The notes: generated by a model from the sequence alone, not told the origin. A DNA stretch of 64,000 nucleotides from Macrostomum lignano (GCA_002269645.1 NIVC01001829.1:62001-126000), one strand, 5' to 3'. Shown: positions 2,166 through 63,890, counted from the stretch's first letter. Program-made: numbers and translations.

Positions 2166-2199
2166 CTGCGGAACCAGTTTGCCAATTTTGTAAAAAATT

Positions 2200-6882: not shown

Positions 6883-6907
6883 TTGCCTTCCAGCGACGGA
6901 AACGTCA

Positions 6908-26842: not shown

Positions 26843-29222
26843 CAAACTCTAACAAACTCTAACTAGCTATGCGTCTCCCTTTGCAGTTTGCAGTTAATTA
26901 ACTTTTTATTTGCATTTTTGGGTACTGCTTAAATAGCCTATTCATTGAATTGAAAGCAAATTGGCAACTCAGAGTGACCTCTGTCAGAGAAAATCAGGGA
27001 AATTTAAAGGGGAAATCACTGAAAATCTGGGAAAGTGATAAATGTTCAGGGAATTTAAAAGATATTCAAAAATCACCTATAATCACCCTCCTAGAATCGT
27101 CCTGCACCTAGAATCGCTAAAAAGCAGGGAATTTTCGATAATCAAAGAATATTGTAGTGTCTGGAACGCCATAACCCAGGTTGTCACAAGTTGGGTTAAT
27201 TTTATTTTTTTATTCAATTTTTTATCTCATTGTTCAATTGTTGTTGCCACAATATGTTTCTCTTGTCAAATAACTCTGCAATTAACATGGCTTTTGTTAT
27301 TTGGGTATTGCTTAAAGTGCTTATTTATTTTGTCACAAGTAGGGTTATTGTATTTTTCACTTAATTATAATTTTTATCATTACATTCTACTAGCATTTTT
27401 AAAATGCCCTGTTTTCTATGAGCTGAAAAGCTAAATAGTATATAGAGGAGAAAAGACTTGAGTATTTTTTATTTTTTAAATGTGCAGGTCTCTGCTGAAG
27501 CCTGCTAATTGGGATGGGATGGGCTATTGCAGTTGTAAAAATGTGCCACAAGTATTAAAATTTGTAGCTAAAATAAGGCTGTAAATGTGGCCGAAAAAGT
27601 GGCCGAAAATATAGTGGCCGCAAGCGGCCCCTTTTTGGTGGCCGATATTGGGACACTTTCGGCCACTCCTCGGCCACTTACGTTCGGCCACCTTTCGGCC
27701 ACTTTTTCGGCTACTTTTCGGTTACAGTGCACTGGGACTATTGGCACTGCAACAGTAGGATTCTTGACTGAATAGATGATTCCTGAAGCAAGAAGTCTTC
27801 TTAGTTCGGTTTCTACCATAGACTTCATGGAGAAAGGAAGTGAGCGAGCAGGAAATCGCATGCCTTCCATACTCACACCCGAACGTAAGCGAAAGCTGGC
27901 AATGAAGTTTGAGTTTTGATCTCGGACGACTGGTAGGCACTTGTGTTCATTCGACACTCGAACCGCTTGATCCATTCGCACTAGGTCTAGGGACGGTATG
28001 AAGTTCATGCCCAGAATAGCTGTTGTATCTTGACCGACGTAGATGTTTTCTGAAGCAGACTTGCCACCAATAACCTGTAGCTTTGCCCCGTAGATGACAG
28101 AAGTGACCGTAGCTTGAAAACCTCCGAAAGATCTTAGTTTTTGGCTAACTGGCTGTAACTCTAAGCCTGAGCTCTTGGCGATTTGATCCGGAACCACGGT
28201 TACTTGGCTGCCGGTGTCCACAAGCATGTTGACTTCGGTTTTTCCTAGACGACACCGAACAAACCACTGATCTGAGTAACCCGTTTTTGGCTGTCTAACC
28301 GCATGAATGAGTTCCAGATGGTAAGAGCTAGTGTTCCCTAGTGAAGGGCTGCAGCTTGGCATTCGTTGGATTGCGTTCATAGCCTTTGATCTGCACACGG
28401 TAGCTAGATGTCCTACCTTGCCGCATTTATGGCACTTGGCTTCTCGGAACCTGCATGCTGATCGTAGATGTCCCGATTTCCCACAGGTGTGACACTTAGC
28501 TGTTTTACCTTTAGGTTTGCCGCTCGACTGATTATGCAGATGTCCCTGAGGTTGCTTGAATGAGACAGAGCGTTGGGCACTGCAGCTTCTTGGTCTCGAG
28601 AATGTCCCAGCATTCTGCACATTAGCGATAGTTTCCGGCTTGTCTGTAGCAGTTGCAATTGACTCGGTCATGAGTCCCTCTTGAATAGCATCATTAAGCT
28701 CAAGCGTGCCCTTGGATAGCAGTTTTTGCCGCAGATTCTGACTACGAAGTCCGAAGATGAACTAAGACAGGATCAGGTCTTCGCGCAATTCACCATATTG
28801 GCACTTGTTCGCCTGTTGCTTGAGCCGTGCAACGAAATTTGTAATGCTCTCTGCGTCCTTTTGAACAGTAGAATGGAAAACATGTCGCTCATAATGAAGC
28901 AGAACTTTCGGTTTGAAGTGCTCGAGCAAAGTGTCCTGAATCGACTTGAACGTAACACCGGCCTTGGTGATGTCTTCTGGTTTTATCAGCTCCTCCACCA
29001 GATTGAATGCAGATTCACCGCAGGTAGCCAGTAGGACTGCTTTAGCTTGCTCATTCTTCTCAGTTGCCTCCAGGTAGAACGGAAGTCGTTTGAAGTATTG
29101 TTCTATCTCTGGGTAAGAAAGTGGCATCTCACCAAGACGGTACACCATTGACTGAGCCATTTTGAGGGCAGCAGGTGCGGAAATTTTCCTCGACCCTGAG
29201 TTGCTTTTTATTCTCGTCGCCA

Positions 29223-34730: not shown

Positions 34731-35783
34731 TTAAGATTGACAGTAAACTGCAAAACCAAAGTCAAAACTTTTGCATACAATAGCGCTCTGACCATGATAC
34801 ACAGTTGACTTATGTCCAATGGTAACTACTCTGAAGCTATCGCCAAGTAGTACTCTTCGCTTATCCGATAAGTTTGTAGACCCACCAAGACAGAATATTG
34901 TATTTCTTTCGGTCCACAGAACTGTATGTCTGTGGCCACAGGAGACACCAGATACAACTTCATCAATCATACTTCCATCAGAGAGTTCAGGTGGCAAGTC
35001 AAGTGGCTCCGGTTCTGAGCACAGAGGAGTATTTTTGATGCCTAGCTGCATTGACTCGTTCCAACCACACATGTATAGATCTCCAGTGCTAGAAAGAAAT
35101 GCACTATGCCAACCACCAGCTGATACAGAAACAATTGAGAGTATACTCAGCGAATCCACTTGCTTAGGAACAGTCAAATCAGCTAAATCGCCATGTCCAA
35201 GTTGACCGTGGGAGCCAACTCCCATGGATAACACTGAGCCATTGTTCGCTAATACAACACAGTGGTCATTTCCACATGCAATTTGGCGGACACGAAATGG
35301 GCAGGCTGGCTCTACAATTGAAATGGCACTGCAGCTGACAACATTGCATAATTTGCAAAGAGCTTCATCACTTGTAATTGAAAACACTTCATTCGATGTT
35401 GTGTGAATGGACTTGAAGCTAACTGATCTCGCATCATTATTGAGGTTGAACTGTATTGGATGTAGCACAATAGTGTCCAATTTGTTTTTAATTGCTTTGA
35501 CAATATCGTGCATTGTTTTGGAATAGATGACGCCCGACAAGATAGCAAGCAAGACTTGGTCAGTAACAGCAAAACCGTCAGCTTTCCTTAATGGTAATAT
35601 TTCACCATCCACTTTTTTAATCGCCATGGTAAATAAACCAGAACTGCACACTAAATAAATGACAGGAGAATCACCATCGGCTGATTCAGCAACAGATAGA
35701 TAAAGACCACCGATGTAGATGTAGTCTTTATTAGACGTCAAAGTTGAATTCCAACAAAGTGATCCAGAGCATTCAAGAGGCAT
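34731..35783 (-). CDS. RCCD1: RCC1 domain-containing protein 1 homologue (one long exon; acceptor TTTCAG just before ATG at 35783)
   Basis: IACGNDH..GVGSHGQLGHG..VSAGGWHS..GDLYMCGWNESMQL..PEPLDLP..VSCGHRHT matches the RCCD1 pattern. Confidence 0.85.
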   Translation of the reverse strand: MPLECSGSLCWNSTLTSNKDYIYIGGLYLSVAESADGDSPVIYLVCSSGLFTMAIKKVDGEILPLRKADGFAVTDQVLLAILSGVIYSKTMHDIVKAIKNKLDTIVLHPIQFNLNNDARSVSFKSIHTTSNEVFSITSDEALCKLCNVVSCSAISIVEPACPFRVRQIACGNDHCVVLANNGSVLSMGVGSHGQLGHGDLADLTVPKQVDSLSILSIVSVSAGGWHSAFLSSTGDLYMCGWNESMQLGIKNTPLCSEPEPLDLPPELSDGSMIDEVVSGVSCGHRHTVLWTERNTIFCLGGSTNLSDKRRVLLGDSFRVVTIGHKSTVYHGQSAIVCKSFDFGFAVYCQS

Positions 35784-36477
35784 CTGAAATGCAGAATGCA
35801 GTAATAACAAATAGGACTTATTATTTATAAACTTTATAGTTATACAAACGATACACTGCTCTTTTAACTTACAACAGCTTGACTATTATATGAACTACCT
35901 GGCAGATAGAAAAACCCAACAGAATCAACAAATTCTTTTGTACGAAATTTCCAGCTTTAATTTTGCAAATGCACATGCAAGTGGCAACTCAAAATATTAA
36001 ACCTGCCAAAGTTCCAAACAATTTTTTTCTTCTGTTTAACTGCCTTACTTCAAATTACTTTAAACATATAATAAATTATTCTGTTTTAACAAAAAAGCAT
36101 ATAATATTATTGCACCATTAGAATTTTCAGCAATTAAAAGCCAAAAAATCATCTCAAACTTAAATGGTATGCCAAAGTAGTATACAGAAATGGCTCAACT
36201 ATCAATTGGTATACTGGAAATTTCTCACATACAAATAACCTTAAATATGGTAATACAAATTTAATTGCAGAAGAACCTGCATCCAAAGTAATGACCAATG
36301 TTGGCACTAGTATATTAATGAAAATCTTATTAAGTTTTAACATTGTTAAGTTGACTAAAAGTTAACTAATTATTGGTAATGAGCATTAATCCATTAATAT
36401 TAACATGTAAATACTGGAATTTCGTACTTTTTTCCAAAACAGTTCAATAAGCAGATAAAGTCGATAATATCGTGCCT

Positions 36478-44356: not shown

Positions 44357-47300
44357 TCATCGACGTTTTGTAGCAGAGTGATGCGACTGCTGCGAGGTGC
44401 CAGTCAACTTCTTGCCACCCGAAACCGAAGAGGCCCCTGCGGTGCTTGAGGATCCACCACCAGCGGTGCTCCCGGCACCTCCGCCACCGCTAACGCCGCC
44501 ACTGTTCAACCCTCTTCCTGCAGTTGACTTCTGCTTGCTTGAGTCTCGCTTCGATCCTTTGGCTAGTTTCTCTAATAAAAGTACGAGGAATTTTATAGTA
44601 ATTTTGTAAGTTTAAATCAAATATTTGCTTTGTTATACGATACCACGAACACCTGAAGTAGAAATTAAGGACGCTGAATAGTGAATACTCGCTTTTCTAA
44701 GAAATGAGCTTGAGACTAATGAAATTTGAGCATATTGTGGTAACGCTAAAAGCGTGTTTAAACCAAAGAACGTATATACACAAGATGGGCTACTCTACCA
44801 TTTGTGACCATGCTATAATGTAAAAAATTTGCATCACTCGACAGCGCGAAAAATTATACTACTTAACTCAATTTCGTCAGTAGTCTCTTCAGTGCATGAA
44901 TTTATTCTTAATTTGATTAAGTGGCTTTTTATTCGATTCATGAGAAGTACGTGTTCTATAAAATTCTCAAAAAATAGGGTCTACACATTATCTGTGGTCG
45001 CTATTGCCCTATTGCCGCAATAGGGAATATAAAATCTATGGGCTAGATTCATTTAAACGCTAAAAAACTTGGCAGCAGTCTAACGTTATGTGAAGATTAG
45101 CTCAAATATCGTGAATACAATGCTGCAAATGTAACCATAGTTCACCCTTAAACATATTGACACTGCTTGCTTTTCCAATTTTTAGACGAATTCCATTCCG
45201 AAAAAAGCATTTTCGGAGGCACTCATATTTAGCGTCGCAGGCACTCATTTTAGCGCCACAAGCACTCATTTTAGCGCCACAGGCACTCATTTTAGCGCCG
45301 GAGGCACTCATTTTAGCGCCGGAGGCACTCATTTTAGCACCGCAGGCACTCATTTTAGCGCCACAGGCACTCATTTTAGCGCGACAGGCACTCATTTTAG
45401 TACCGCAGGCACTCATTTTAGCCCCACAAGCACTCATTTTAGCGCGACGCACTCATTTTAGCGCGACAGGCACTCATTTTAGTACCGCAGGCACTCATTT
45501 TAGCGCTACAGGAACTCATTTTAGCACCGCAGGCACTCATTTTAGCGCCGGAGGCACTCATTTTAGCGCCACAGGCACTCATTTTAGCGCCGGAGGCACT
45601 CATTTTAGCGCCACAGGCACTCATTTTAGCGCCAGAGACACTCATTTTAGCGTCGCAAGCGCTATGCTTCGTTGCCCTAAAGCGAAAGTATTGATATCCA
45701 TAATACTTCAACAAAGGTGGGGTGTTGGCGGGCAAAATATTGGCATGTACTCCCATAACTTTTACCGGGGGAACATGTCCCCCCCCCTCGTGGCGACGCC
45801 CCTGAGAGATGCAGCAACTTGTAAGCTGATACATAATTATTTTTTACAAATATAACGTCTTACCCAGATAAGCTTTCGTGACAATCTCCTCATTGTCTAG
45901 TAACGGAGTGTAAACCAGTCTTCCTTTATTGTTCTCTGCAAGTTGAAAGCCAAAGCTTTACTATAAGCATACTTTGTTGAATATTAGAAGCGCTAATAAG
46001 AGGCCTTGTCTTTGCTAAACACATTGCGCTGAAAGTCAGTGTCCCCTGGAACTCCTGACCTCAGTGTCCCCTGGAACTCCTGACCTCAGTGTCCCCTGGA
46101 ACTCCTGACCTCAGTGTCCCCTGGAACTCCCGACCTCAGTGTCCCCTGGAACTCCCGACCTCAGTGTCCCCTGGAACTCCTGACCTCAGTGTCCCCTGGA
46201 ACTCCTGACCTCAGTGTCCCCTGGAACTCCTGACCTCAGTGTCCCCTGGAACTCCTGACCTCAGTGTCCCCTGGAACTCCTGACCTCAGTGTCCCCTGGA
46301 ACTCCTGACCTCAGTGTCCCCTGGAACTCCTGACCTCAGTGTCCCCTGGAACTCCTGACCTCAGTGTCCCCTGGAACTCCTGACCTCAGTGTCCCCTGGA
46401 ACTCCCGACCTCAGTGTCCCCTGGAACTCCCGACCTCAGTGTCCCCTGGAACTCCTGACCTCAGTGTCCCCTGGAACTCCCGACCTCAGTGTCCCCTGGA
46501 ACTCCCGACCTCAGTGTCCCCTGGAACTCCCGACCTCAGTGTCCCCTGGAACTCCCGACCTCAGTGTCCCCTGGAACTCCCGACCTCAGTGTCCCCTGGA
46601 ACTCCCGACCTCAGTGTCCCCTGGAACTCCCGACCTCAGTGTCCCCTGGAACTCCTGACCTCAGTGTCCCCTGGAACTCCTGACCTCAGTGTCCCTTAGA
46701 ACTGACCCATGTGTCCCTTAAAGCTCCCCAAAAGTACAAATTCCCATAGTTATATAGTACTTAACCTGACTTTGAAGACTTCAAAACATAGGCAAGATTA
46801 CCTCCAACTCTGATCAGGACGCAGTCCTCTCTGTCAGCCAGTACCTCCTTTGCGGTCATGTTGGGATATTTTCTCAGATCCTTCACGTTTCCGTCTTTGT
46901 CGGACAAATCTATTATTTCTGTAAAAAAGATTGACAGTAATAGTCTATGTGTATTAGGTCGTGCCCAGCTGCTATGCTCCTATGTGAACCAATGGTTGAT
47001 GAAATCAATCATTTTGTGACGAAAGCAACCATAAAGGAACAAAATTACCGCACTGTGTGACAAAAGCAACCATTGTGTGACAAAACCAACCATTGTGTGA
47101 CAAAATCAACCATTGTGTGATAAAATCAACCACTGTGTGACAAAACCAACCACTATGTGACAAAATCAATCATTGTGTGACAAAATCAACCATTGTGTGA
47201 CAAAATCAACCATTGTATGACAAAATCAACCATTGTGTGATAAAATCAACCATTGTGTGACAAAATCAACCATTGTGTGACAAAATCAACCATTGAGCGG

Positions 47301-48040
47301 TGCAATAAACCATTTTGTAACAAAATCAACCATTGTGTGACAAAATCAACCATTGTGTGACAAAACCAACCACTATGTGACAAAATCAACCATTGAGCGG
47401 TGCAATAAACCATTTTGTAACAAAATCAACCATTGTGTGACAAAATCAACCATTGAGCGGTGCAATAAACCATTTTGTAACAAAATCAACCATTGTGTGA
47501 CAAAACCAACCATTGTGTGACAAAATCAACCATTGTGTGACAAAATCAACCATTGTTATAACAAAATCAACCATTGTGTGACAAAACCAACCATTAAGCT
47601 ACCTAAGTTTTACACACAAAAAGATATTTTTACTATAGAAACGGGTTTGTCTTCCCGTATACAATAAAGTAAATTGTCTTTTTCAAAATGCTCACCACTT
47701 GAGCCAAAATTGCAGCACTTGTCACGAATTGCCCGTAGCAGTGCTGCGCACTTGCAGTCCTGGTTGAACAGGGTCTCCACGTTGGCTGCAGTTTTAATGG
47801 AGCATTTATTGAACTACGTTTCACTAAACAATGTTTTGTGTCAGATGGCTGATGGACATACCACTTTCACCTGCGACTGATGTTGTCAAGCACAGGTGCG
47901 TACATGCACCAGGTTCACCAAATCTCCCCAAAAAGTTCCAAAAGCTATTAAGCCATCAATGGTGTTTGTACTCGTAAATCTTCCGCTACATATCCATAGA
48001 TCAGGCTCTTACCTCCGTGTTTGACAGTGATGAACACCAT
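44357..48040 (-). CDS. CXorf65/C22orf15-family (Pfam Il2rg-like) protein, 5 exons, 173 aa
   Basis: Exons 48013-48040, 47696-47785, 46802-46918, 45864-45935, 44357-44571, all GT-AG and phase 1, splice to MVFITVKHGANVETLFNQDC..IIDLSDKDGNVKDL..REDCVLIRV..YTPLL.. plus a Gly/Ser tail. Family call is from memory of the motif pattern. Confidence 0.85.
45217..45655. repeat. 21-bp minisatellite in intron 4
   Basis: Unit GGCACTCATTTTAGCGCCACA, about 20 copies. Confidence 0.95.
46037..46698. repeat. 25-bp minisatellite in intron 3
   Basis: Unit CAGTGTCCCCTGGAACTCC(T/C)GACCT, about 26 copies. Confidence 0.97.
47053..47596. repeat. 20-bp minisatellite in intron 2
   Basis: Unit TGTGTGACAAAATCAACCAT with interspersed variant GAGCGGTGCAATAAACCATT. 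Confidence 0.95.
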
Positions 48041-48477
48041 TTCTATAACTGATGGCACTGTAGAAACTTATTGCAAAGATCGGTACTATAGCAGTTATCT
48101 CAGAAACAGCAGCAATTAAATTCAGATTAGAGCTTTCACTTTTGAGCATTGCACAGTTATATAGAATAATTTTTCATGGCGCGAGTGTCTTTCGTTTCGG
48201 CTGCACTAGTTCAGTTCTGCACTACTCCTGGCTGGCTTAGCACAAGGGTTATACACACTCGGCCAATCTCCCTTTGTTAGCAGGCAGCAAATATAAATAG
48301 GGCTGAAGTTTGCTCAGTGGCACAATGGGTAGCTTGTGGCTTTTCTGCTCCTGCTTCTCCGTTTGCCTGCTTTTTCTCTCGGCAATTTCTTCAGCTTGCA
48401 TGCAGCTCTCGTAAAATTATTTTTACAATCTGCATTCTTACTTTTAGATTAGAAGCCAGATAGAAAAACATGCTTTT

Positions 48478-49465
48478 GTTGGAGTGTGGGGAATATTAGT
48501 GGACTGTATGGATCCTGTTGATGTTAGTGTGGGGAGACTTACAGGGCTGTATGGGTGTTGGTGATGTTGGAGTGTGGGGAGACTTACAGGGCTGTATGGG
48601 TGTTGGTGATGTTGGAGTGTGGGGAGTATTAGTGGACTGTATGGACGTTGATGTTGGAGTGTGGAGAGACTTACAGGGCTGTATGGGTGTTGGTGATGTT
48701 GGAGTGTGGGGAATATTAGTGGACTGTATGGACGTTGATGTTGGAGTGTGGAGAGACTTACAGGGCTGTATGGGTGTTGGTGATGTTAGAGTGTGGGGAG
48801 ACTTACAGGGCTGTATAAGTGTTGGTGATGTTGGAGTGTGGGGAATATTAGTGGACTGTATGGACGTTGATGTTGGAGTGTGGAGAGACTTACAGGGCTG
48901 TATGGGTGTTGGTGATGTTAGAGTGTGGGGAGACTTACAGGGCTGTATAAGTGTTGGTGATGTTGGAGTGTGGGGAATATTAGTGGACTGTATGGACGTT
49001 GATGTTGGAGTGTGGAGAGACTTACAGGGCTGTATGGGTGTTGGTGATGTTAGAGTGTGGGGAGACTTACAGGGCTGTATGGGTGTTGGTGATGTTGGAG
49101 TGTGGGGAGACTTACAGGGCTGTATGGGTGTTGGTGATGTTGGAGTGTGGGGAGACTTACAGGGCTGTATGGGTGTTGGTGATGTTGGAGTGTGGGGAGA
49201 CTTACAGGGCTGTATGGGTGTTGGTGATGTTGAAGTGTGGAGAGACTTACAGGGCTGTATGGGTGTTGGTGATGTTGAAGTGTGGGGAATATTAGTGGAC
49301 TGTATGGATCCTGTTGATGTTAGAGTGTGGGGAGACTTACAGGGCTGTATGGGTGTTGGTGATGTTGGAGTGTGGGGAAACTTACAGGGCTGTATGGGTG
49401 TTGGTGATGTTGGAGTGTGGGGAATATTAGTGGACTGTATGGACGTTGGAGTGTGGAGTTGGTGA
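48478..49465. repeat. Compound minisatellite of 45-bp and 42-bp units
   Basis: GATGTTGGAGTGTGGGGAGACTTACAGGGCTGTATGGGTGTTGGT (45) and GATGTTGGAGTGTGGGGAATATTAGTGGACTGTATGGACGTT (42). Confidence 0.95.
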
Positions 49466-50786: not shown

Positions 50787-52502
50787 ATGCTTCAAATCGT
50801 TGATGCTATGACGTCCACAACAGCGCACGGACTGCCAAGGATTGTAAGTGGCAAACCACTCACTGTGCGACTGGCTTGGCTCTCTGTGCTGCTGCTAATG
50901 ACGGGTCTATTCTTCAAAGGATTCTACGACTTCGTTGTCAAGCTGCAGACTCGTCAGGTGACCAGCTCGGTCGATGGAAACAGCCTCAACTTCCAGTTCC
51001 CGGATGTGTACGCTTGCTACGAGAACCCGATCTCCGGAAGCTACTCTGCGACTGTGGATGAGGCATCGGCTGCTGCAATCAATGCTCAGCTCAATGATTC
51101 GCAAGTTGTAATGAGACGAGAGCTTTCAATGCTTGGGTACGTCGGCAACGCATTTATGGGAGCAGAGATGTTGTTCTCGCTTGCCCATCCTCAGTCTATA
51201 TCTTATAGAATCTTGATAGACGCTCTGGCTCACCGAAACGAACAGAATATCATCACAAGCGATGTCGCTTATAACACCGACTACGGAATGCCCGAATATG
51301 CGCCCCTCGAAGCGCAGATCTTCTACCATCCGATGTACTTGCGCTGTCTCAAGTGGACTCTGAACAGCACGTGGCAACAAAAGATCGTACAGACCGGCTC
51401 ATCATCCGGCATTGTGGTCACCTTGGTTACGGACTCGGCGTTTCAAGGACTCGCATCGAGCGGACACTCGATCCAAAAGATGGTGTACGCAAGACGAACT
51501 CCCATTCCTGTGTCCGACTGGTCGCTCAATGTCGCCGACTACAACGGACCCGACAGACAAGCAGGTGTGAAAGTGTTCCTCACGCCTCCAGGTGAGTATC
51601 CGTCCGATTTCGTGAGCTCGTTCTCGCTGGGACCCGGAAAATTCCACACCGTCGAGATCGACATGACGCAGCAGGTGTACAAGGCTGGTCAGTTCGACTG
51701 TCTGAGCGACCCGCCGGACGTTCAGTTCGTGAACCCGTACGACGAGACTCCATACCGGCACTCGTACAGCTACTCGTACTGCTTCTACTACGAGTTCCAC
51801 CGACAGAACCAAGAACTCGTCAACATGTCAGGTATAATTGGACCGCTTCCTTGGCCTCTTCGTGGGAAGAAGTTTGTAATGAATCTTACTGATGACCCAA
51901 ACTTCTTTATCTACTTTCGTGATCCATCGCTTCAAATCAAAAGTGGAAAAATCGACCAGAATACAAAGGCTGTGTGCAAAGCTAAGCGACCTTGCACCAC
52001 TCTGCAGTACAGCGCGACCATCTCCAGTTCCGACTGGCCCACTCAGAGCTCAATGATGCCGTTCGTCAGCAGCTCCATCAAGCCTGTTTGGATGAGGGCC
52101 AAGTCTAAGAATCTGAGTGTTCCGGCTCTCGACCTCGTCGTGAACGGAAACGAGTCGATCGTGTCATCATACATCCGCAGCAACATGCTCAAAGTACACT
52201 TCAAGCCGCATCGAGTTCTGTGCGATCGCATGAACTTCTCGATCGACTACGGTTTGCAGGACTTCATCTCGGACGTCGGCGGCATCATGGGCATCTACCT
52301 GGGAATGTCTCTGCTCACCCTGTGCGAGCTGTTTGAGCTCATCTTCGACATCGCCTCCTTTGGCAGGAAGAAAGCAAGAGCTTCCAGCTCCAAGCAGGCG
52401 GCTGTGTCTCCAAAGAAGTTCAAAGTCAGCGAAGAGAGTCACTTGCCGCCGAAACAGTCTACAAAGCGCCTCAGCATCAGCAGCATCTCAAGCTTGCCTT
52501 GA
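50787..52502 (+). CDS. DEG/ENaC (amiloride-sensitive sodium channel family) subunit, copy 1, intronless, 571 aa
   Basis: STxHG motif, TM1, FPxVxxC, GVKVFL, YSxxxC, DFISDVGGIMGIYLGMSLLTLCE (TM2 with GxS filter). Confidence 0.93.
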   Translation: MLQIVDAMTSTTAHGLPRIVSGKPLTVRLAWLSVLLLMTGLFFKGFYDFVVKLQTRQVTSSVDGNSLNFQFPDVYACYENPISGSYSATVDEASAAAINAQLNDSQVVMRRELSMLGYVGNAFMGAEMLFSLAHPQSISYRILIDALAHRNEQNIITSDVAYNTDYGMPEYAPLEAQIFYHPMYLRCLKWTLNSTWQQKIVQTGSSSGIVVTLVTDSAFQGLASSGHSIQKMVYARRTPIPVSDWSLNVADYNGPDRQAGVKVFLTPPGEYPSDFVSSFSLGPGKFHTVEIDMTQQVYKAGQFDCLSDPPDVQFVNPYDETPYRHSYSYSYCFYYEFHRQNQELVNMSGIIGPLPWPLRGKKFVMNLTDDPNFFIYFRDPSLQIKSGKIDQNTKAVCKAKRPCTTLQYSATISSSDWPTQSSMMPFVSSSIKPVWMRAKSKNLSVPALDLVVNGNESIVSSYIRSNMLKVHFKPHRVLCDRMNFSIDYGLQDFISDVGGIMGIYLGMSLLTLCELFELIFDIASFGRKKARASSSKQAAVSPKKFKVSEESHLPPKQSTKRLSISSISSLP

Positions 52503-52749
52503 ATACCCTTTTCTGTTGAGATTCTGACTAAGCGCTAAAAATATCCAACGACAGCTTAACAAACTAACGTGTTTTCTAGTAGAATAGCTATATGGTCATT
52601 TCTCGAATGCCACGTAAGCAAGATAAAAAAGTTAACAGGACTTAATATTTATTTCTGTAATAAACTTTTCGTTTTGATGGCTGTCTTTGCGTACCGTTTT
52701 TTCGAATTTCTCAATGTTTTTTTTCACAACAATGTTGTTTGAACCATCA

Positions 52750-54913
52750 TGTAACCGCCCTTTATGACCGTCTGCTCAGCGGGGAGGAGAGCAACTGACC
52801 ATAGGGGGGCAATGACCGTAGGCTGCCGATGACCTGGCAATGGCCTGACGGACCTCCAGCACCAGACTGTCCCGCCCAAATGATTGATAGCTTTGGTAGC
52901 GCTTTCGTGACCAGAGGGCCAAGGACCCACATGGACTCCGCCTGTAGCCAAGGTGCGTAAATTGGTCACTCGGCCATGGTATGACCGAGTGGCTGCCACC
53001 ACTCTATATGACCTGGCGCACCTGGATCTTGACCAGACCTTTCGAGGCTAGAGCCCCGCCTGGATTGATAACCAGGGGATTTGGGCTAACAGGGGAGACG
53101 CACGCAGCCGAGTTTTCAGACTCTGCTTTGTGCTCAATTAGGAACTCTGGGATCACTCTGGAGGATTTCTCAGCAGGGGGTCCTTTGTGGCTGTGATTGA
53201 GGCGGACTTGCGGCTACAATTACTAAGAGTAGTGTGAGTTGAACATGTGCTAGCTATAGTTTAAATTGCTCAGGGCGAAGGGACACGTAAGCAAGGTGTT
53301 GCAACCTTCCTGCTGCCATTCTGTGCCATAACCCACTACTTCCCTCTACTGCACGCACACACACGGACCCGCCACACGCACACACAGGCGCGCTTTGCAC
53401 GGGGAGAGGTCATTAGCTTACCCAAACTTCCCCATGCTTTGCCACCCAAGGAGTAAGGCGTATGATGGGAGTATGATGGGTTTAGTAATGGTTAATAATT
53501 AGGCCCGCAGGCGAAATACACAGGCAATTAGGCGGCTTCACTATATTGAATAAATTCAGCAAAAATACGGTATACAATTGGCTCAGCTCTCTAATCAAGC
53601 AATGGCAAACAAGCAAACCCAGGATAAGCAAAGGCAATTAGAGCACGAATTAGTACAGGAACTTACCGGCGGCTGCACAGAGAGAGAGCGATGGAGTGAC
53701 CGAGGTCGGCTGTAGACTGCGGACAGGCAGGTAGCGAAGCGGCGATGCGCCGAAGCGACGAGGCGCAGATGTAGCTCAGACGGTGCTGAGGATGCTGGGC
53801 GGTGTCAGACCGCGGGCCAGTAGATGAGCTCGCTTGGGGAGCTTAGGGAACTTGGTGGTATCAGACCGCGGGCCGGCAGAGCGTCGGCCTATAGACGAAT
53901 GGTGAGGGTCAGATCAATGTCTGACAGCAAGTCCAAAGAAGGACCACTTCGGAGACGAGACACAAGGGTAAAGCCTTCTGAGGATTCTCACGCCGAAAAT
54001 CACTTCCTTAAATAGTCCTCACGGCCGCCGCTCCAAGGTCGTTTCCATGACTCCCTCTCTCTGATTGGCTGCCAGGAAAATGACGTCAGAATGAGTCATG
54101 ATGAGAAGCATGAGAACGGCATAGCAACATGAGAAATTGGAAAATTGCGCAATCCGGAGGAGGGGTGGGTGATAATGAGCACAGCGGGGGGTCGAAGAAG
54201 TGTTGCGCAAGCAAACATTGAGAACAATGGACTCAGGCCGAAAACAAAGGAAATGTAAATCGGGGATAATTGGGGAGAACCGAGAACAATAGAAAAGTAA
54301 ACATTGGAGAAAAGGTGCTAATTGGGTGCGAAAAAGAGAACAATAGAACGAGAAAATCTGGGAAAATGTGATAATTAGGTAGGAAAACGAGAACAAAATA
54401 ATCAAAAACGAGAACAATAGAAGCGGAGGTGGGGTGGGCGTCACATGAGAAATCTTGAGAAGAGAACAATAGCATGAGAAAAGGTTGCGCAAGAGGGGTG
54501 CTGAGTCATCGGGGCTAAGGAGGGGTCAGAAGCCTTGCGTCACCGTTTGGGATTCTAAAAGGGGATGGGGCGACGGTGAGCACAAGCAATACGGTAAGTA
54601 AGCACGGGATGAGAAGGGGACAGCGCAAGAAAAACATGCTAAAACAGGAGGAGAAAAGGTGAGAAAAACATGAGAAAAGGGGAGGGGCGCATGAGAAGTG
54701 GGGAGGCGGGCGAGGGGCACGTAGGGCTCCGGAAAGGCAAGTGTGGCTGAGTGGGAGACGGAACAGAGACAGCAGAGGCGCAGCAAGCGAGAGTCAGTCA
54801 GCCTGGTCAGGGACCCGGCCCAGTCTCGACAGCTCTGCCCAGTAGATGCACAGAGATCGGGGATGCTTCAAAAAAAATTCCCTCACGATCCCACGACCAG
54901 AGCGTGGTTACAT
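52750..54913 (-). mobile_element. Probable large solo LTR F (about 2.16 kb)
   Basis: TGTAAC..GTTTACA inverted ends; pyrimidine-rich minus strand like LTRs A and E; minus-strand TGGTGGCAGC at 53001-52992; only a 3-bp flanking repeat (TCA). Confidence 0.55.
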
Positions 54914-56097
54914 CATATTATTAGTATCTATGTACGAAGTACAAGAGAATGAACTCTCATGAGCGGTACGCGATGATGGTTACGCATGTTTTATTAGTAG
55001 ACACGGACATCCTTACATGTATCCATGGTAGATTAAGGCAAGAAGCCTCTAAACAGCAGTTTCAGTTAAAAAACAGACGCAGCCGGCAGTACGCTGGGGA
55101 TAAAGAAACAGCGTCACAGCGCCAGGGCACATCAGCAGGCAGCCGGTAAAACGCAGAGCGCATGCATGCGGTGGCGTCCCTGTCGAGCCAGCTTGCAGAA
55201 CGCTTAATCTGCACCGTCAAGCGCAGATGCCTTTGCAGGATGCACCAGGTCACTTAGACGAATGTTATAAGGTGTCGCGTTGGTGACATGCTCGCAGCAG
55301 TCAATGAGTCCTCGCGGCTGTCCATTCATGAAGCAACGCGTCCATCGAAAAGTAACGGATTTGATTTAACACACAGGTGATTTCTCAAGCCACACAGCGG
55401 ATGCTCAATGATTCAAAGACCGTCTGTGTCTGTACTCATGCAGCGCTAACATCTGAGCCAGAATAAGAACTTCATCTTGGCTCCAGTGACTAGGTGGCAA
55501 TAGAGACGACACCTTAATGACTGCATCGTCATACCCGCCAGCGCTGCAGGTGGATAGTTAATTCAATATGGTCTTCGTTATTTACTCAAGACTATTGGGA
55601 AAGCAGTCTTGGCGAAAGCTAGCACACATCTAATATTTTTACAAGAGTATTGCCTTACTAAAGAAACATAAACCAAAACTAACATCCCTCAGCTGTAGGG
55701 TTTGCAGAATTCTCTGCAACTGCTAAATTATAGATTACCGTTGCAAATCTTTATGCGCACGAATGCAAGCACACGGCTGATTGCCTAAGACCTAACAGCC
55801 GAGACTCGCTATAAAATGCTAGAGTTGGCAGATTCATAAGCCTGAGAATATTAGTGAAATTTCTCTCAGTGCGCTGCTTAATTAATTCAGAATACTGAGC
55901 TTTCCCACAGCTGCAGAAATTGAAGTACTTGCTGAAGCGAAACTCAAATTCCAGGAAGTATTGATTTTCATGTGAGTGGAGGAGGAGTGGCAAAAAAGGA
56001 ACAGAAGACTCAGAGTAAAAACGGTTCATAAATAGCAGTTACTCCCGGGAAGAGAGAATGCTTCGCATCAAACAATTAAAACCACGAAGAAACAAGG

Positions 56098-57810
56098 ATG
56101 CAGCAATTTAAGGAAGCCATGGCTTCAACATCAGTGCACGGACTGCCCAGAGTAGTGAGCAGCAAACCACTGGTTGTGCGAGGTTTCTGGTTTACAATGA
56201 TGCTGCTGATGTCGGGGCTTTTCTTCTATGGTTTCTACCGATTCGTTGTCAAGCTGCAGTCTCGGCAGGTCACCAGCTCACTCGATGGAAACAGTCTCAA
56301 CTTCCAGTTCCCGGATGTGTACACCTGTTTCGAGAACCCGATCTCTGGCAGCTACTCTGCTACTATTGATGAGGCATCGGCTGCTGCAATCAACGATCAG
56401 CTCAATAGCTCTCAAACCGTCCTACGGCGGGGATTGCAAATAAACGGATTAACAGAAACTACACCCCAAGAAATGAGGCTATCCCGTGCTTATCCTCAGT
56501 CAATATCATATCAGCTGTTGATTGATGCTCTGGCTCACCGAAACGAACAGAGCATCATCACGAGTGACTTCAAGTTTAAAACAGGTTATGGACTGGCCGA
56601 ATATGTGACCATCAAAGCGCAGACCTTCTACCATCCGATGTACTTGCGCTGTCTCAAGTGGACTCTGAACAGCACGTGGCAACAAAAGATCGTACAGACC
56701 GGCTCATCATCCGGCATTGTGGTCACCTTGGTTACGGACTCGGCGTTCCAAGGACTCGCATCGAGCGGACACTCGATCCGCAAGATGGTGTACGCAAGAC
56801 GAACTCCCATTCCTGTGTCCGACTGGTCGCTCAATGTCGCCGACTACAACGGACCCGACAGACAGGCAGGTGTGAAAGTGTTCCTCACGCCTCCAGGTGA
56901 GTATCCGTCCGACTTCGTGAGCTCGTTCTCGCTGGGACCCGGAAAGTCCCACACCGTCGAGATCGACATGACGCAGCAGGTGTACAAGGCTGGTCAGTTC
57001 GACTGTCTGAGCGACCCGCCGGACGTTCAGTTCGTGAACCCGTACGACGAGACTCCATACAAGCACTCGTACAGCTACTCGTACTGCTTCTACTACGAGT
57101 TCCACCGACAGATGCAGCAGCTCGTCAATCTGTCAAGCGATGCCGGTCCTCTTCCGTGGCCTCTGCGTGGAAAGAAGTTCGCACTTAACCTTACAGGTGA
57201 TCCAAACTTCTTGGTATTTTTTAGCGACCCATCTCTGGAACCTCTCACCAGTCAGATCGACGTAAAATCGAAAGAGACATGTAAAGCTAAACGACTTTGC
57301 AGCACACTGCAGTATAGCGCGACCATCTCCAGTTCCGACTGGCCCACTCAGAGCTCAATGATGCCGTTCGTCAGCAGCTCCATCAAGCCTGTTTGGATGA
57401 GGGCCAACTCTAAGAATCTGAGTGTTCCGGCTCTCGACCTCGTCGTGAACGGAAACGAGTCGATCGTGTCATCATACATCCGCAGCAACATGCTCAAAGT
57501 GCACTTCAAGCCGCATCGAGTTCTGTGCGATCGCATGAACTTCTCGATCGACTACGGTTTGCAGGACTTCATCTCGGACGTCGGCGGCATCATGGGCATC
57601 TACCTGGGAATGTCTCTGCTCACCCTGTGCGAGCTGTTTGAGCTCATCTTCGACATCGCCTTATTTGGCAGGAAGAAAGCAAGAGCGTCAAGCTCCAAGC
57701 AGGCATCTGTTTCTACAATCCAGCAGTTCAAAGTCAGCGAAGAGAGTCACTTGCCGCCGAAAGAGTCTACTAAGAGCCTCAGCATCAGCAGCATCTCAAG
57801 CGTGCCTTGA
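56098..57810 (+). CDS. DEG/ENaC subunit, copy 2, intronless, 570 aa
   Basis: Same motifs as copy 1; offset 5305 bp in the conserved blocks; 3' UTR also homologous. Confidence 0.93.
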   Translation: MQQFKEAMASTSVHGLPRVVSSKPLVVRGFWFTMMLLMSGLFFYGFYRFVVKLQSRQVTSSLDGNSLNFQFPDVYTCFENPISGSYSATIDEASAAAINDQLNSSQTVLRRGLQINGLTETTPQEMRLSRAYPQSISYQLLIDALAHRNEQSIITSDFKFKTGYGLAEYVTIKAQTFYHPMYLRCLKWTLNSTWQQKIVQTGSSSGIVVTLVTDSAFQGLASSGHSIRKMVYARRTPIPVSDWSLNVADYNGPDRQAGVKVFLTPPGEYPSDFVSSFSLGPGKSHTVEIDMTQQVYKAGQFDCLSDPPDVQFVNPYDETPYKHSYSYSYCFYYEFHRQMQQLVNLSSDAGPLPWPLRGKKFALNLTGDPNFLVFFSDPSLEPLTSQIDVKSKETCKAKRLCSTLQYSATISSSDWPTQSSMMPFVSSSIKPVWMRANSKNLSVPALDLVVNGNESIVSSYIRSNMLKVHFKPHRVLCDRMNFSIDYGLQDFISDVGGIMGIYLGMSLLTLCELFELIFDIALFGRKKARASSSKQASVSTIQQFKVSEESHLPPKESTKSLSISSISSVP

Positions 57811-58329
57811 ATTGTTCATTTTCCTGTTGAGATTCTGGCTAAGCGTTGAAATATCAAACGACAGGTTAACAACTTCACGCGTCTTAGCTCGTATTTAATG
57901 GACCTTGCGTGCGCGTAATCCCGTTGATTTACGTTCGAGTGACCATATCATTTGAGGCTACTTGATCAGGCAGAACTTAATGAGAGTAGTCTACCTGCAT
58001 GGTCAATTCTTGAATGGCAATTACTCTAGATCAAAAAAGTTAACAGTACGTAATATTTACTGCTGTAGTTAACTTCTTTGAAGTTATCTCGAATTTGCTT
58101 GTGCTTTTCTCTGTTTTTTTAGGTTGAAGAGTCAAATGTTGCAAATATCCAGATATTTTTTTCATAAAGTTCTCCAATTTTGATTAATACTATACTTGGA
58201 TTACTCGGAAATACTAATTAAAGCATACATAATCGTACATGTATAACTATTGTCCAATGATAGGTGACAGCATGGTACACCCTATTGTGTCGTCTGGGCC
58301 TACTGCAATGGATGTGTGAACTAGCTTTG

Positions 58330-58430
58330 GTGCAGGAATTCATCTCGGACGTCGGCGGCATCATGGAAATCTCATCTAACCCTGTGCGAGCTGTTCTAGC
58401 TCATTTTTGATGTAGCCTAGTATAGTTACA
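58330..58430 (+). pseudogene. DEG/ENaC TM2 fragment
   Basis: CAGGAATTCATCTCGGACGTCGGCGGCATCATG..ACCCTGTGCGAGCTGTT, with an internal deletion and a stop. Confidence 0.75.
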
Positions 58431-58780
58431 GCTAGGCCTTAACCTGCGACCTCAAACAGTCAGCAGCTGAGGTCAGCCAGGAGAATGAGTTCAAGCATCA
58501 GAAGCCTGCGTGCCATGATGGAATAATCCGAGGAGTGGTTGATTGTCGTACGCATGAAGGTTTTTGGAATCGAAGCTTATTACGCCTTGTGATAAAATCG
58601 CGAGTGCGCCGAGCAAAAATTGGACGTGGGATAGGAGAGAACAATCAAGGGAATAATTTGGCACTCAACCTTGCGAGCTGAAGCTTACATACGCTGGTAA
58701 TAGTTCCCAATTGTCCCTTTGCTTGTTCTGTCCTATTTCAGGTCCAATTTTTGTAACTTTTTTGCCAAATCCAGCTTCCT

Positions 58781-59467: not shown

Positions 59468-59872
59468 ACTGCGAGCAGCATGAAGTATAATTTGTGTACA
59501 TAACGGTAGGTTACTCGGGCTCCACTTTATGAGCTTAATTTGACAGGCCCTTTCAACCGTTTAAACATTCACTGAGCCGTGAATGATCAACTACGACGTA
59601 AGAGTAGAAGGAGAGACTGCGGCCTTGTCCACTGATGAATTGAGACAAGCGACATGGCGTCCAGAGAACCCACGGCTGTCCTGAAGAAAAACCGGGTAAA
59701 GTGTTCTATCTACTTTTAACTTGCTTTGTGCATTGACTTCAAATTTGCCGGCTTTGATTTACAAGACTGCTAAAAAGACTCCGCTTGTTCATAATTGATA
59801 TAGCTGAACTCCAAAATTTCTGTCTAAAGCTACCTGATCTACAATGCACTATTGTTCTATTCGGTTTTCAAG

Positions 59873-61020
59873 AATGTTCTCGCGGTTTCTAGAACCTTCT
59901 TCCAAACGGAGTTTTTTTAAAATATAGAAGGACCTTAAGAAACAAAATAATTGTCATCCGAAACAAGCACCTTCTGCCATTTTTTCAGGCAGAGACGTAG
60001 TGCCATCAGTGTAGAATTTCTCAGGTTTCGAGGCAAAAAAGTCGTTGAGCCGGTTATCCAGCGCTTTTTCATCAGCAAAAGGCGTTTTACTCGTCAAGGC
60101 GTTCATCAAAGCCAAGAGCAGATGGTAGTCGCTGGGCGCCAGTTGGGGGAATATTGACGACATATACAGCGGATGGCAGAATGTGTGCAACGCAGTGGTA
60201 AACTATGTGGAGAAGCCTCAGGAAAATGTTGATGACTCAATTTTAACTGTTCTTTCCTCAGCTTTCATGTAGCGGATGTTTTGCTGATTCGTTGAATGTT
60301 TCGTTGTTTCGTGCATCAGGTACAAAGCTTTGGTCAATGGCAATTTGAAGAAGTAGCGCAGGGGGTGGGGCAGAAAAGTGTTCATATCTCAAGAATGCCA
60401 GCAGATAGAGAAATAAATAGAAAGTCATTTTAACGGGCAGATAATTCTCTTTTCAGATGCTACAAACTAAATATTTCTGATCGGTCAGAAAAGGCTGTAG
60501 TGAATAAATTGCACCGACTTTTGGGACACCCCTCCCTCGTACACCTTGCCCAGTTGATGCAAGCGTGAGTGGTGATCGTTTGATGGTCTACCCCAAGGAC
60601 TTGCGCCAACACACGCGTGGTTTTTTGGGAGTCGGCCTCAATGAGTGCGCACAGGTAGATGGTCATCATCCACCTCAGAAGGACGCCCTGACCGGGGCAA
60701 ATCTTCGAGGCTGAAATCTCCCTGGCGAAACCGAGCAAACCAATCTTGCGCAGTGCATTCAGACACAGTACCAGCACCAAATGCACTGTTAATGCAGCGG
60801 TTCGATTCGGCTGCTTTGGTGCCAAATTTGAAGTCATATAGTAACAGACCACAAATATAGGGTCGAGAGAGATCCATGTAGTTGATCTGTCTTCGATAGC
60901 AACAATCATGAAAAGTAGTCTCTCGCACGCACCCACCCTCAATATATACCCACATAGTAAGCTTCTAGAATGTTCCAGAAAGTTCTAGGGGTAGAATTTT
61001 CTAGAAACCGCGAGAACATT
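59873..61020 (-). mobile_element. Mariner relic with internal deletion
   Basis: 22-bp inverted repeat AATGTTCTCGCGGTTTCTAGAA (59873-94 / 60999-61020); HTH region LLYDFKFG..WFARFRQGDFSLEDLPRSGRP and LAPSDYHL. Confidence 0.85.
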
Positions 61021-61079
61021 CCCGACAAGCGAAATCAATTTCTGTCTGAGAAAAATCGGGAAGTTAATTACATTGATAT

Positions 61080-61691
61080 GCACTTTCGCTGACATTAACA
61101 TGCCCGTTGTTTGCGGGCATCTACCTGAATTTTACTAGCGAGCCGAACCTTTCAATACTTTACAAAGTGACTTCTTACATGGCTTACATGCAGCAGTTTG
61201 CCGATGTAGCAATTATTAAACGTAAAACCAAGAAGCCTTGCAGCACACTGCAGTACAGCGCGACCATCTCCAGTTCCGACTGGCCCACTCAGAGCTCAAT
61301 GATGCCGTTCGTCAGCAGCTCCATCAAGCCTGTTTGGATGAGGGCCAACTCTAAGAATCTGAGTGTTCCGGCTCTCGACCTCGTCGTGAACGGAAACGAG
61401 TCGATCGTGTCATCATACATCCGCAGCAACATGCTCAAAGTGCACTTCAAGCCGCATCGAGTTCTGTGCGATCGGATGAACTTCTCGATCGACTACGGTT
61501 TGCAGGACTTCATCTCGGACGTCGGCGGCATCATGGGCATCTACCTGGGAATGTCTCTGCTCACCCTGTGCGAGCTGTTTGAGCTCATCTTCGACATCGC
61601 CTCCTTTGGCAGGAAGAAGACCAAAGTATCGAGCGCTCAGCAGTTGGGTGATTCGCAAGAACAAAGCAACGATAATCAGTGCACAGCATAG
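61080..61691 (+). pseudogene. DEG/ENaC copy 3, C-terminal part only, with a different thumb segment and tail
   Basis: Near-identical to copies 1 and 2 from PCSTLQYS to FGRKK; 5' part cut off at the mariner. Confidence 0.85.
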
Positions 61692-63622: not shown

Positions 63623-63624
63623 CT

Positions 63625-63890
63625 GACGTACCCAAGCATTGAAAGCTCTCGCCTCATTACAACTTGCGAGTCACTGAGCTGAGCATCGATTGCAGCGGCC
63701 GATGCCTCATCCACAGTCGCAGAGTAGCTACCAGAGACCGGGTTCTCATAACAAAAAGCTTACAGGAAAACTGGAAGTTCAACCTGTTTCCACCACCTGT
63801 TTCCAATCGCACATACAGCGTCTTGCTTCCAACCCCCCTTGACAGTCGGTGTGTTGCGGAAGATGCTGTGGCATCCAGTATTTGTTGCAT
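63625..63890 (-). pseudogene. Inverted DEG/ENaC N-terminal fragment, TM1 deleted
   Basis: MQQILDATASSATHRLSR.., then DNA closely matching copy 1 at about 51015-51145; cut by the LTR at 63622. Confidence 0.85.

Follow-up and report, generated by a model that had tools for sequence, protein, structure and literature searches.

A mosaic of homogenised and divergent blocks in tandem intronless DEG/ENaC genes of Macrostomum lignano

The locus and its genes

The window analysed is a 64-kb stretch of Macrostomum lignano DNA, with coordinates counted from its first letter. In it, lineage-specific DEG/ENaC genes without introns form a small tandem cluster of two intact members and three decayed fragments. 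Both intact genes lie on the plus strand, spaced by 5.3 kb: copy 1 (50787-52502) is an open reading frame of 571 amino acids and copy 2 (56098-57810) one of 570, and their products share 83% amino-acid identity. One close relative was found in the protein databases. The window is also rich in transposons and satellites.

By profile, predicted fold and motifs, copies 1 and 2 are subunits of the DEG/ENaC family (Pfam ASC, PF00858). The profile is matched from position 3 to 455 of 455 in each case, with E = 1.1e-41 (143.8 bits) for copy 1 and E = 3.4e-43 (148.8 bits) for copy 2, the curated cut-off being 23.6 bits. In addition, both translations carry the signature motifs, namely HG (H14-G15), FPxxxxC after TM1 (F71-P72...C77) and G-x-S in TM2 (G506-M507-S508), where G506 and S508 are invariant in a 15-sequence alignment. 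The AlphaFold model of copy 1 (pLDDT 72, pTM 0.68, with confidence below 50 at residues 123-137) predicts TM1 at residues 25-54, TM2 at 490-534 and a large ectodomain, with helices α1-α7 in the canonical order. When this model was submitted to Foldseek, FaNaC, ASIC1 and ENaC were matched with a probability of 1.00 and TM-scores of 0.5-0.6, normalised by target length; the top matches were FaNaC and ASIC, with FaNaC in ranks 1-3. Judging from the intact reading frames, the preserved motifs and a dN/dS ratio (ω) of about 0.1-0.35 in every block, both genes probably encode working channels.

Regarding the fragments, copy 3 (61125-61691, plus strand) was counted as a third copy in the original prediction, but it is not a gene but a truncated 3' fragment spanning codons ~365-544 (tblastn). 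It matches only positions 363-455 of the ASC profile (E = 9.7e-18), and no upstream part was found in the profile search over all six frames of the window. Copy 3 is composed of a thumb of its own type (T3), lacking the near-invariant Cys397, an island of the block called core2 below, and its own tail. On the minus strand, a 5' pseudogene fragment (psi4, 63624-63890) has a start codon, lacks TM1 through a deletion and carries a frameshift, followed by the start of a finger of the copy 1 type, and its homology stops past codon ~119. A degenerate, frameshifted remnant of TM2 and the C-terminus lies 0.5 kb 3' of copy 2 (58330-58504, plus strand; tblastn E = 4e-5, blastn 74.5% over 102 nt). Between copies 2 and 3 there is a decayed mariner-like transposon (59860-61033, minus strand), having terminal inverted repeats of 44 nt that are 84% complementary and an HTH_48 Mos1-transposase domain (E = 3.7e-14).

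Alternation of near-identical and divergent blocks

An unsupervised BIC change-point segmentation of the nucleotide alignment of copies 1 and 2 divided the genes into four segments, all on the plus strand, whose limits agree to within a base or two with the block coordinates proposed originally. The first (50787-51309/56098-56614, copy 1/copy 2) is 72.7% identical and includes the variable block A (51084-51309/56395-56614), with 65% nucleotide identity and one 6-nt indel. The second is the homogenised block B (51310-51807/56615-57112), with 10 differences in 498 nt (98.0%), matching the roughly ten differences claimed between 51311-51807 and 56616-57112. The third, the variable block C (51808-52001/57113-57306), is 64.9% identical and indel-free; thus, the earlier description of both variable blocks as divergent with indels holds for their divergence and for the indel of block A, but not for an indel in block C. 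The fourth (52002-52502/57307-57810, 96.8%) begins with the homogenised block D (52002-52376/57307-57681), which is also present in copy 3 (61236-61618) with a three-way identity of 97.9-98.7%, as anticipated for 52002-52370, 57307-57675 and copy 3. The only other indel is of 3 nt, in the C-terminal tail.

Outside the coding sequence, similarity is confined to ~75 nt of the 3' UTR (52503-52575 and 57811-57885, plus strand), as seen by self-blastn and alignment. Past this match there is only a weak 78% patch (52578-52667 vs 57985-58075), and neither the 5' flanks nor the intergenic DNA of copies 1 and 2 align.

Silent divergence was calculated per block for the same pair by the Nei-Gojobori method. 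The dS is 0.048 in block B (core1, codons 179-340) and 0.043 in block D (core2/TM2, codons 405-530), 1.26 in the finger of block A (codons 100-178) and saturated, at > 3, in the thumb of block C (codons 341-404). The N-terminus and TM1 have a dS of 0.76, in agreement with the many silent changes already noticed there, codons 63-99 one of 0.40 and the C-terminal tail one of 0.22. The equal dS of the two homogenised blocks would also fit one long recent tract in which the thumb was replaced later. Over 452 same-amino-acid codons, silent differences vary strongly from block to block (chi-square 96.6, 5 d.f., p = 2.7e-19), and adjacent blocks of one reading frame differ more than 25-fold, so dS is far from uniform along the gene, as had been expected. 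The blocks fall into at least three age classes (dS about 0.045, 0.2-0.8 and > 1), implying several separate events.

The homogenised blocks have a GC3 of 0.73-0.79, compared to 0.42-0.53. This excess resembles GC-biased conversion, yet it may come from the codon usage of conserved segments, because a distant paralogue has a similar GC3 profile.

Location of the blocks in the predicted structure

The variable blocks are located at the finger helices α1-α3 and the thumb helices α4-α5, as indicated by the AlphaFold secondary structure, the fold match to FaNaC and ASIC and a profile alignment to FaNaC1, and this confirms the placement first made by homology. Block A covers the C-terminal half of α1, then α2, α3 and a β hairpin, with helices predicted at residues 92-115, 122-131 and 140-153. 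Block C has predicted helices at residues 329-345 and 381-398, and comprises the end of α4, a loop and α5. Meanwhile, block B contains the β-ball and palm together with the start of α4, and block D contains β10, the knuckle, palm strands β11-12 and TM2 with its G-M-S motif. Compared with a 37%-identical paralogue, the finger (25% identity) and the thumb (23%) are the least conserved blocks, the others retaining 39-51%, except for the unconserved cytoplasmic tail.

The best profile matches in the PDB are FaNaC structures (7yvb and 8on7; E = 1.7e-69 and 7.5e-61), although with only 15-18% identity. These channels and the M. lignano proteins share a minimal N-terminus, the G-x-S pore motif and a helical finger α1-α3; however, the finger residues cannot be reliably aligned, and the thumb of the M. 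lignano proteins has few cysteines. In FaNaC1, helices α1-α3a make the peptide pocket and gating is transmitted by the thumb (PMC11026163), and block A corresponds to this pocket in the profile alignment, the match being approximate. In published trees, some M. lignano genes are placed in a sister branch of FaNaC, outside FaNaC itself (PMC9234716). Channels of this species near the FaNaC branch did not respond in oocytes to FMRFa, YMRFa, FVRIa or two Macrostomum Wamide peptides, the assayed channels not being matched to copies 1 and 2 (PMC9234716).

Modules shared between copies

Copies 1 and 2 differ in both finger (types F1 and F2) and thumb (types T1 and T2), and the other sequences relate to them differently according to the segment compared. 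The island in copy 3 is identical to each of copies 1 and 2 at 378 of 383 nt (98.7%), flanked on either side by sequence only 41-48% identical to them, and its three-way informative sites alternate between copy 1 and copy 2 states. A near-identical, sharp-edged island with alternating sites in a truncated copy indicates that the exchange is mechanistic and repeated, and does not stem from selection acting on a functional protein.

Where the finger block begins, psi4 agrees with copy 1 at 46 of 49 nt and with copy 2 at 21 of 49, while its 5' end is equally distant from both. The database protein P0001, also from M. lignano and derived from an older assembly independent of that of the window, has the copy 1 state at the first 60 diagnostic residues, one private change excepted. 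From a point between codons 230 and 286, inside block B, it follows copy 2 instead, with one exception, thus joining an F1 finger to a T2 thumb. Instead of a true recombinant, P0001 could be the product of copies collapsed over the near-identical block during assembly, and its two private substitutions speak only weakly against this. The combinations found are F1-T1, F2-T2 and F1-T2, in addition to fragments with F1 or T3, giving two finger and three thumb types. As read from these sequences, the pattern is one of a few old cassettes reassorted through conserved recombination blocks.

Origin of the mosaic

Silent differences fall into discrete tracts, these tracts lie within older sequence that includes the flanks, and P0001, psi4 and copy 3 show conflicting relationships by segment. 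The mosaic is a clear case of an ordinary process. The flanks do not align and parts of the coding sequence show saturation at silent sites, so the duplication is old and the 98% blocks are secondary. With two full genes and three fragments of one species as its base, the explanation that we consider highly probable is that old tandem duplicates had their core and pore blocks overwritten by non-allelic recombination and their finger and thumb cassettes reassorted. Non-allelic homologous recombination, in the form of interlocus gene conversion and probably also of unequal crossing-over, would have overwritten two blocks of ~0.4-0.5 kb time and again, one with the β-ball/palm core and the other with the knuckle, palm and TM2 of the pore. 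The N-terminus, the segment before the finger and the C-terminal tail may have recombined less recently. The finger and thumb, the fastest-evolving parts across the family, would by now be past the identity needed for recombination, so that conversion tracts end at their edges, leaving sharp boundaries that are found again in other copies. Exchange in the conserved flanking blocks would then reassort whole finger and thumb cassettes between loci. In this respect, the homogenisation of scaffold and pore proposed in the original prediction is supported, with a dS of about 0.045 inside old duplicates.

The same prediction went further, proposing that selection diversifies the finger and thumb and shields them from conversion, giving a chemoreceptor-like repertoire with different ligand specificities. 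The coincidence of the variable blocks with the finger and thumb, the pocket and gating roles of the equivalent FaNaC1 regions, the recurrence of the boundary between thumb and β10 in three copies and the residue differences of about 42-44% between copies 1 and 2 in these blocks are favourable to it. However, dN/dS does not follow this expectation: the finger has an ω of 0.26 (dN 0.33) and the thumb one of 0.09, at most 0.1 (dN 0.29), and the N-terminus and TM1, which form no sensor surface, reach 0.32, not below the finger. Moreover, the ratio of nonsynonymous to silent differences is alike whether blocks are variable, intermediate or homogenised (Fisher p = 0.40 and 0.67), suggesting that the blocks differ in age, with no detectable difference in selective regime, although such a pairwise test, with dS saturated in the variable blocks, cannot detect selection at single sites. 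F1 is also nearly unchanged in three sequences, which indicates that modules were copied and not individually diversified, and the window contains only two intact genes, with one close database relative. The variable blocks are old, and nothing so far points to selection for diversity; a diversified repertoire is therefore doubtful, and of the original interpretation the homogenisation and the structural mapping stand, but the active diversification of sensor modules does not.

The order of events could also be reversed, the whole of 51310-52376 having been recently homogenised. Short conversion tracts from more distant paralogues or pseudogene fragments elsewhere in the genome would then have replaced the thumb of one copy, and the finger at an earlier time, as a cassette import resembling pseudogene-templated diversification. 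The equal dS of blocks B and D suits a single time of homogenisation, and the gene fragments of the cluster could serve as donors, psi4 carrying an F1 cassette with 94% identity. Nevertheless, the window contains no sequence that could have supplied T1 or T2, T3 being only 41-48% identical to either, and this order requires that a short donor of divergent sequence recombined without flanking mismatch, which is possible but of which there is no sign here. This order seems unlikely.

As M. lignano is a repeat-rich neopolyploid with a difficult assembly (PMC10733133), cross-mapping of reads from different copies in consensus polishing or a partial collapse of repeats could be thought to have inflated the similarity of the blocks, the more so in a window full of transposons and satellites and with the recombinant P0001 coming from an older assembly. 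Such an artefact is very improbable. The copies are in one contig with unique flanks, their blocks still differ at scattered positions, including nonsynonymous ones, and have three-way informative sites, and a drop of dS from > 1 to 0.045 could not be produced by polishing. The longest perfect identities are ~160 nt, far below long-read length, and in blocks B and D the independently assembled P0001 agrees with one or both window copies at all residues but the private R437K.

Extreme silent-site constraint without recombination (antisense coding overlap, RNA structure or codon selection) is scarcely credible: although the conserved blocks are high in GC3 and antisense open reading frames of 132-136 amino acids lie over block B in both copies, these frames have no Pfam match and are expected by chance from rare TTA, CTA and TCA codons (permutation P = 0.57 and 0.13), block D has the same dS without such a frame, the island persists with sharp edges in the truncated copy 3, and a dS drop of at least 25-fold far exceeds known codon-bias effects.

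Comparison with known systems and implications

Interlocus gene conversion and unequal crossing-over are known from primate red/green opsin hybrids, RHD/RHCE and the domain shuffling of KIR genes. The M. lignano genes resemble these systems in their sharply bounded, near-identical tracts of 0.3-0.5 kb amid old divergence, in flanks that are not homogenised, in hybrids with a single switch point in a conserved block and in the involvement of pseudogene fragments. However, the DEG/ENaC family and a free-living neopolyploid flatworm host are new for this pattern, and full-text literature searches on gene conversion in ENaC, degenerin or pickpocket genes gave no report of it. Since the genes are intronless, exchange takes place within the coding sequence and not in conserved introns.

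In mosaic families of chemoreceptors and antigen receptors, hypervariable cassettes sit between conserved framework blocks, for example through segmental conversion from pseudogene donors. The cluster is similar in its conserved blocks around divergent cassettes, in their varied combinations and in its possible donor fragments. It differs in having only two finger and three thumb types, two intact genes, no signal of positive selection in the pairwise test and no sign of a programmed mechanism.

A broader reading, which seems improbable at present, is that the conserved coding blocks serve as joints for recombination, by which ligand-binding finger cassettes and gating thumb cassettes are shuffled combinatorially among tandem genes, homeologous loci and pseudogene fragments of this neopolyploid. 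If true, the functionally distinct subunits so produced would form a cassette-based sensory repertoire, of which none has been described in this ion-channel family.

Cluster Organization and Database Relatives

Two intact DEG/ENaC genes are located on the plus strand, copy 1 (50787-52502) and copy 2 (56098-57810), both being intronless open reading frames (571 and 570 aa, respectively) that match the whole Pfam ASC/PF00858 profile (E = 1e-41 and 3e-43) and possess the HG motif, the FPxxxxC motif after TM1 and the G-M-S pore motif. As judged from their sequences, both are under purifying selection and probably encode working channel subunits. The same cluster contains decayed pieces, detected by tblastn and a six-frame profile search. 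Copy 3 (61125-61691, plus strand), first taken as a third gene copy, turned out to be a truncated 3' fragment covering codons ~365-544, where a near-invariant cysteine is lost; its 5' part was not found, either by tblastn with E up to 50 or by a profile HMM in all six frames. In addition, there are a 5' fragment, psi4 (63890..63624, minus strand), with TM1 deleted and a frameshift, and a degenerate TM2 remnant (58330-58504).

Regarding the surroundings, four distinct satellite arrays follow one another in a row close upstream of copy 1 (45217-49448), with units of 21 bp (45217-45657), 25 bp (46036-46703, 98% matches), 20 bp (47002-47595) and 45/132 bp (48477-49448); they account for strong swings of GC skew at 46-50 kb, as well as for long spurious repeat ORFs in this part. 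A decayed mariner-like transposon (59860-61033) is bounded by terminal inverted repeats of 44 nt (84% complementary), and its transposase is broken, with the Mos1 HTH_48 domain retained; it was rejected as the direct cause of the copy 3 truncation, since ~90 nt separate its end from the start of the homology. Downstream of the TM2 remnant, a 52-nt inverted repeat (58614-58753; 81% complementary, 36-nt spacer) possibly represents a small foldback or MITE-like element. Elsewhere in the window, transposon ORFs are abundant, at 2090-5084 (+), 19104-21236 (-), 27568-28671 (-) and 12732-13988 (+), including Ty3/gypsy-type RT/RNase H/integrase at two places, gag/aspartyl-protease and a MULE transposase with a FLYWCH finger. 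For the ORFs at 23022-24539 (+), 25472-26842 (+) and 6833-7816 (+) (505, 456 and 327 aa), Pfam gave no match; they could derive from transposons or represent genes lacking annotation. Besides the DEG/ENaC genes, just one apparent cellular gene was noticed in the window, a 359 aa ORF with RCC1 repeats (34731-35810, minus strand; E = 2.7e-26).

The closest database protein, A0A1I8GD92 (hereafter P0001), comes from an older assembly of the neopolyploid flatworm M. lignano (PMC5704211, PMC10733133). This protein covers the full length of a DEG/ENaC subunit, with a precomputed PF00858 domain and 93% identity to copy 1, and its UniRef source name, 'Acid phosphatase', is unsuited to the protein. Besides P0001, a word-indexed protein search returned only one M. 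lignano paralogue with 37% identity (P0002), and no exact-protein matches to copy 1, copy 2 or P0001 were found in public assemblies. An exhaustive HMMER search gave 547 relatives, used only for the profile and structure alignment; beyond P0001 and P0002, the best among the matches listed had 27-28% identity. The P0002 gene model (BOX15_Mlig033047g1; NIVC01004250.1, L001 9779-11544) looks truncated at the 5' end, because homology to copy 1 reaches 222 nt upstream of the annotated start, and a single short intron, absent from copies 1 and 2, interrupts it around the codon ~285 position.

Mosaic Divergence of Copies 1 and 2

Penalised-likelihood segmentation of the copy 1/copy 2 alignment, with no prior boundaries, produced four segments in copy 1: 50787-51309 (72.7% nucleotide identity), 51310-51807 (98.0%, 10 differences in 498 nt), 51808-52001 (64.9%) and 52002-52502 (96.8%). 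This unsupervised procedure recovered the block coordinates of the original prediction almost to the base. The dS values (Nei-Gojobori) are far from uniform between blocks, being 0.76 in the N-terminus/TM1 (codons 1-62), 0.40 in the pre-finger (63-99), 1.26 in the finger (100-178), 0.048 in core1 (179-340), above 3 and thus saturated in the thumb (341-404), 0.043 in core2/TM2 (405-530) and 0.22 in the C-terminal tail (531-572). Likewise, the silent differences among 452 same-amino-acid codons are very uneven across blocks (chi-square 96.6, p = 2.7e-19). A uniform dS had been named as what would refute the mosaic, and the values thus pass this check. Indels had been described in both variable blocks, and one of 6 nt is present in the finger but none in the thumb, the other being of 3 nt in the C-terminal tail.

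The placement of these blocks on the protein was examined with an AlphaFold model from a 15-sequence alignment (pLDDT 72, pTM 0.68), which has TM1 at residues 25-54, finger helices at 84-115, 122-131 and 140-153, thumb helices at 329-345 and 381-398, knuckle helices at 420-466 and TM2 at 490-534, as well as the beta-ball and palm strands. Foldseek matched it to FaNaC, ASIC1 and ENaC structures with probability 1.00, and the best match of the family profile was FaNaC (E = 1.7e-69). Variable block A (codons 100-178) comprises the C-terminal half of alpha1, alpha2, alpha3 and the following hairpin, and variable block C (codons 341-404) the end of alpha4, a loop and alpha5, so their assignment to the finger and thumb was correct.

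The FMRFamide pocket of Malacoceros FaNaC1 consists of alpha1-alpha3a, and movement reaches the pore via the thumb (PMC11026163); by profile, this pocket corresponds to approximately residues 84-139, through a weak alignment and with low model confidence at 123-137. M. lignano channels near the FaNaC branch, not identified with copies 1 and 2, have been expressed and were unresponsive to FMRFa, YMRFa, FVRIa or two Macrostomum Wamide peptides (PMC9234716).

Recombination as the Probable Source of the Mosaic

The similarity between copies 1 and 2 extends from ~15 nt after the ATG to ~75 nt past the stop codon, and neither their promoter-side flanks nor their 3.6 kb of intergenic DNA can be aligned. 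Therefore, the age of the duplication is that of the most divergent blocks, and the near-identity of the 98% blocks is secondary. The clearest case is copy 3, where an island of 383 nt has 378/383 identity to each of copies 1 and 2, the sequence on either side being only 41-48% identical to them, and its informative sites carry copy-1 and copy-2 states in alternation. Because the fragment is truncated and lacks the cysteine, its sequence indicates that this identity is not maintained by selection at the protein level. Moreover, at least three age classes of block point to several events. Recombination is thus strongly supported as the cause of the mosaic, and we consider it highly probable. 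Gene conversion between tandem paralogues is a common, ordinary process; in full-text searches on ENaC/degenerin paralogs and pickpocket tandem genes, no report of it in DEG/ENaC genes was found.

The variable blocks are shared cassettes. At the start of the finger block, psi4 agrees with copy 1 at 46/49 nt and with copy 2 at 21/49 nt, its first 88 nt being about equally distant from both. In P0001, 284 of the first 285 residues match copy 1 and all but two of the remainder match copy 2; at diagnostic residues, it equals copy 1 at the first 60, except for one private change, switches between codons 230 and 286, in core1, and equals copy 2 thereafter, with one exception. From sequence comparison, this is the expected product of unequal crossing-over or a long conversion tract between copies 1 and 2. 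As P0001 comes from an older assembly, it could also be a collapse across the near-identical block, against which its two private substitutions are a weak argument. Both patterns indicate that cassettes are shared and not private, and the family thus consists of a few old ones, fingers F1 and F2 and thumbs T1, T2 and T3, in varied combinations: F1-T1 in copy 1, F2-T2 in copy 2, F1-T2 in P0001 and T3 in copy 3.

In the homogenised blocks, GC3 lies at 0.73-0.79, compared with 0.42-0.53 in the variable blocks, matching the prediction of GC-biased conversion, but this contrast is ambiguous with respect to codon usage in conserved segments. As the GC3 profile along the gene is similar in P0002, a distant paralogue on another contig, its value as a signature of biased conversion was downgraded.

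Selection on the Finger and Thumb

It had been proposed that the sensor modules diversify, as in a chemoreceptor repertoire. By block, dN/dS is 0.26 for the finger, 0.1 or less for the thumb, 0.32 for the N-terminus/TM1 and roughly 0.2 for the homogenised blocks. The nonsynonymous:synonymous ratio is statistically indistinguishable across block classes (Fisher p = 0.40 and 0.67), in a pairwise test that, with dS saturated in the variable blocks, is blind to selection at individual sites. Therefore, the blocks differ in how long ago homogenisation last reached them and not in a detectable selective regime. Diversifying selection on the finger and thumb is not supported by these ratios, nor is a chemoreceptor-like repertoire by them or by modules common to several copies.

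A simpler account, suggested by the sequences, combines fast evolution with an identity barrier. The finger and thumb segments would evolve fastest until their identity falls under the level that recombination needs, and conversion tracts would then stop at their edges, which would explain the same boundary recurring in three copies. In favour of this account, conservation relative to P0002 is likewise lowest in the finger and thumb (25% and 23% identity, other blocks 39-51%, except for the unconserved cytoplasmic tail).

Antisense ORFs over block B (core1), at 51402-51812 (-) and 56707-57105 (-) (136 and 132 aa) and in register with the sense codons, were rejected as the cause of its silent-site conservation, since they arise by chance (permutation P = 0.57 and 0.13) because TTA, CTA and TCA codons are scarce.

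Implications for the DEG/ENaC Family

The blocks have separate histories, so that a tree built from whole genes carries no meaning for such paralogues; family phylogenies and dN/dS scans call for corresponding caution in Macrostomum and in other polyploid genomes. The range of DEG/ENaC activators, including protons, peptides, force and proteases, is owed largely to the finger and thumb, and at this locus both are seen, in natural sequence, to be exchangeable as units on a constant palm/pore scaffold. Thus, the locus is mainly of use as a set of natural finger/thumb chimeras, where F1-T1, F2-T2 and F1-T2 offer ready material on the role of the finger and thumb in ligand specificity and gating.
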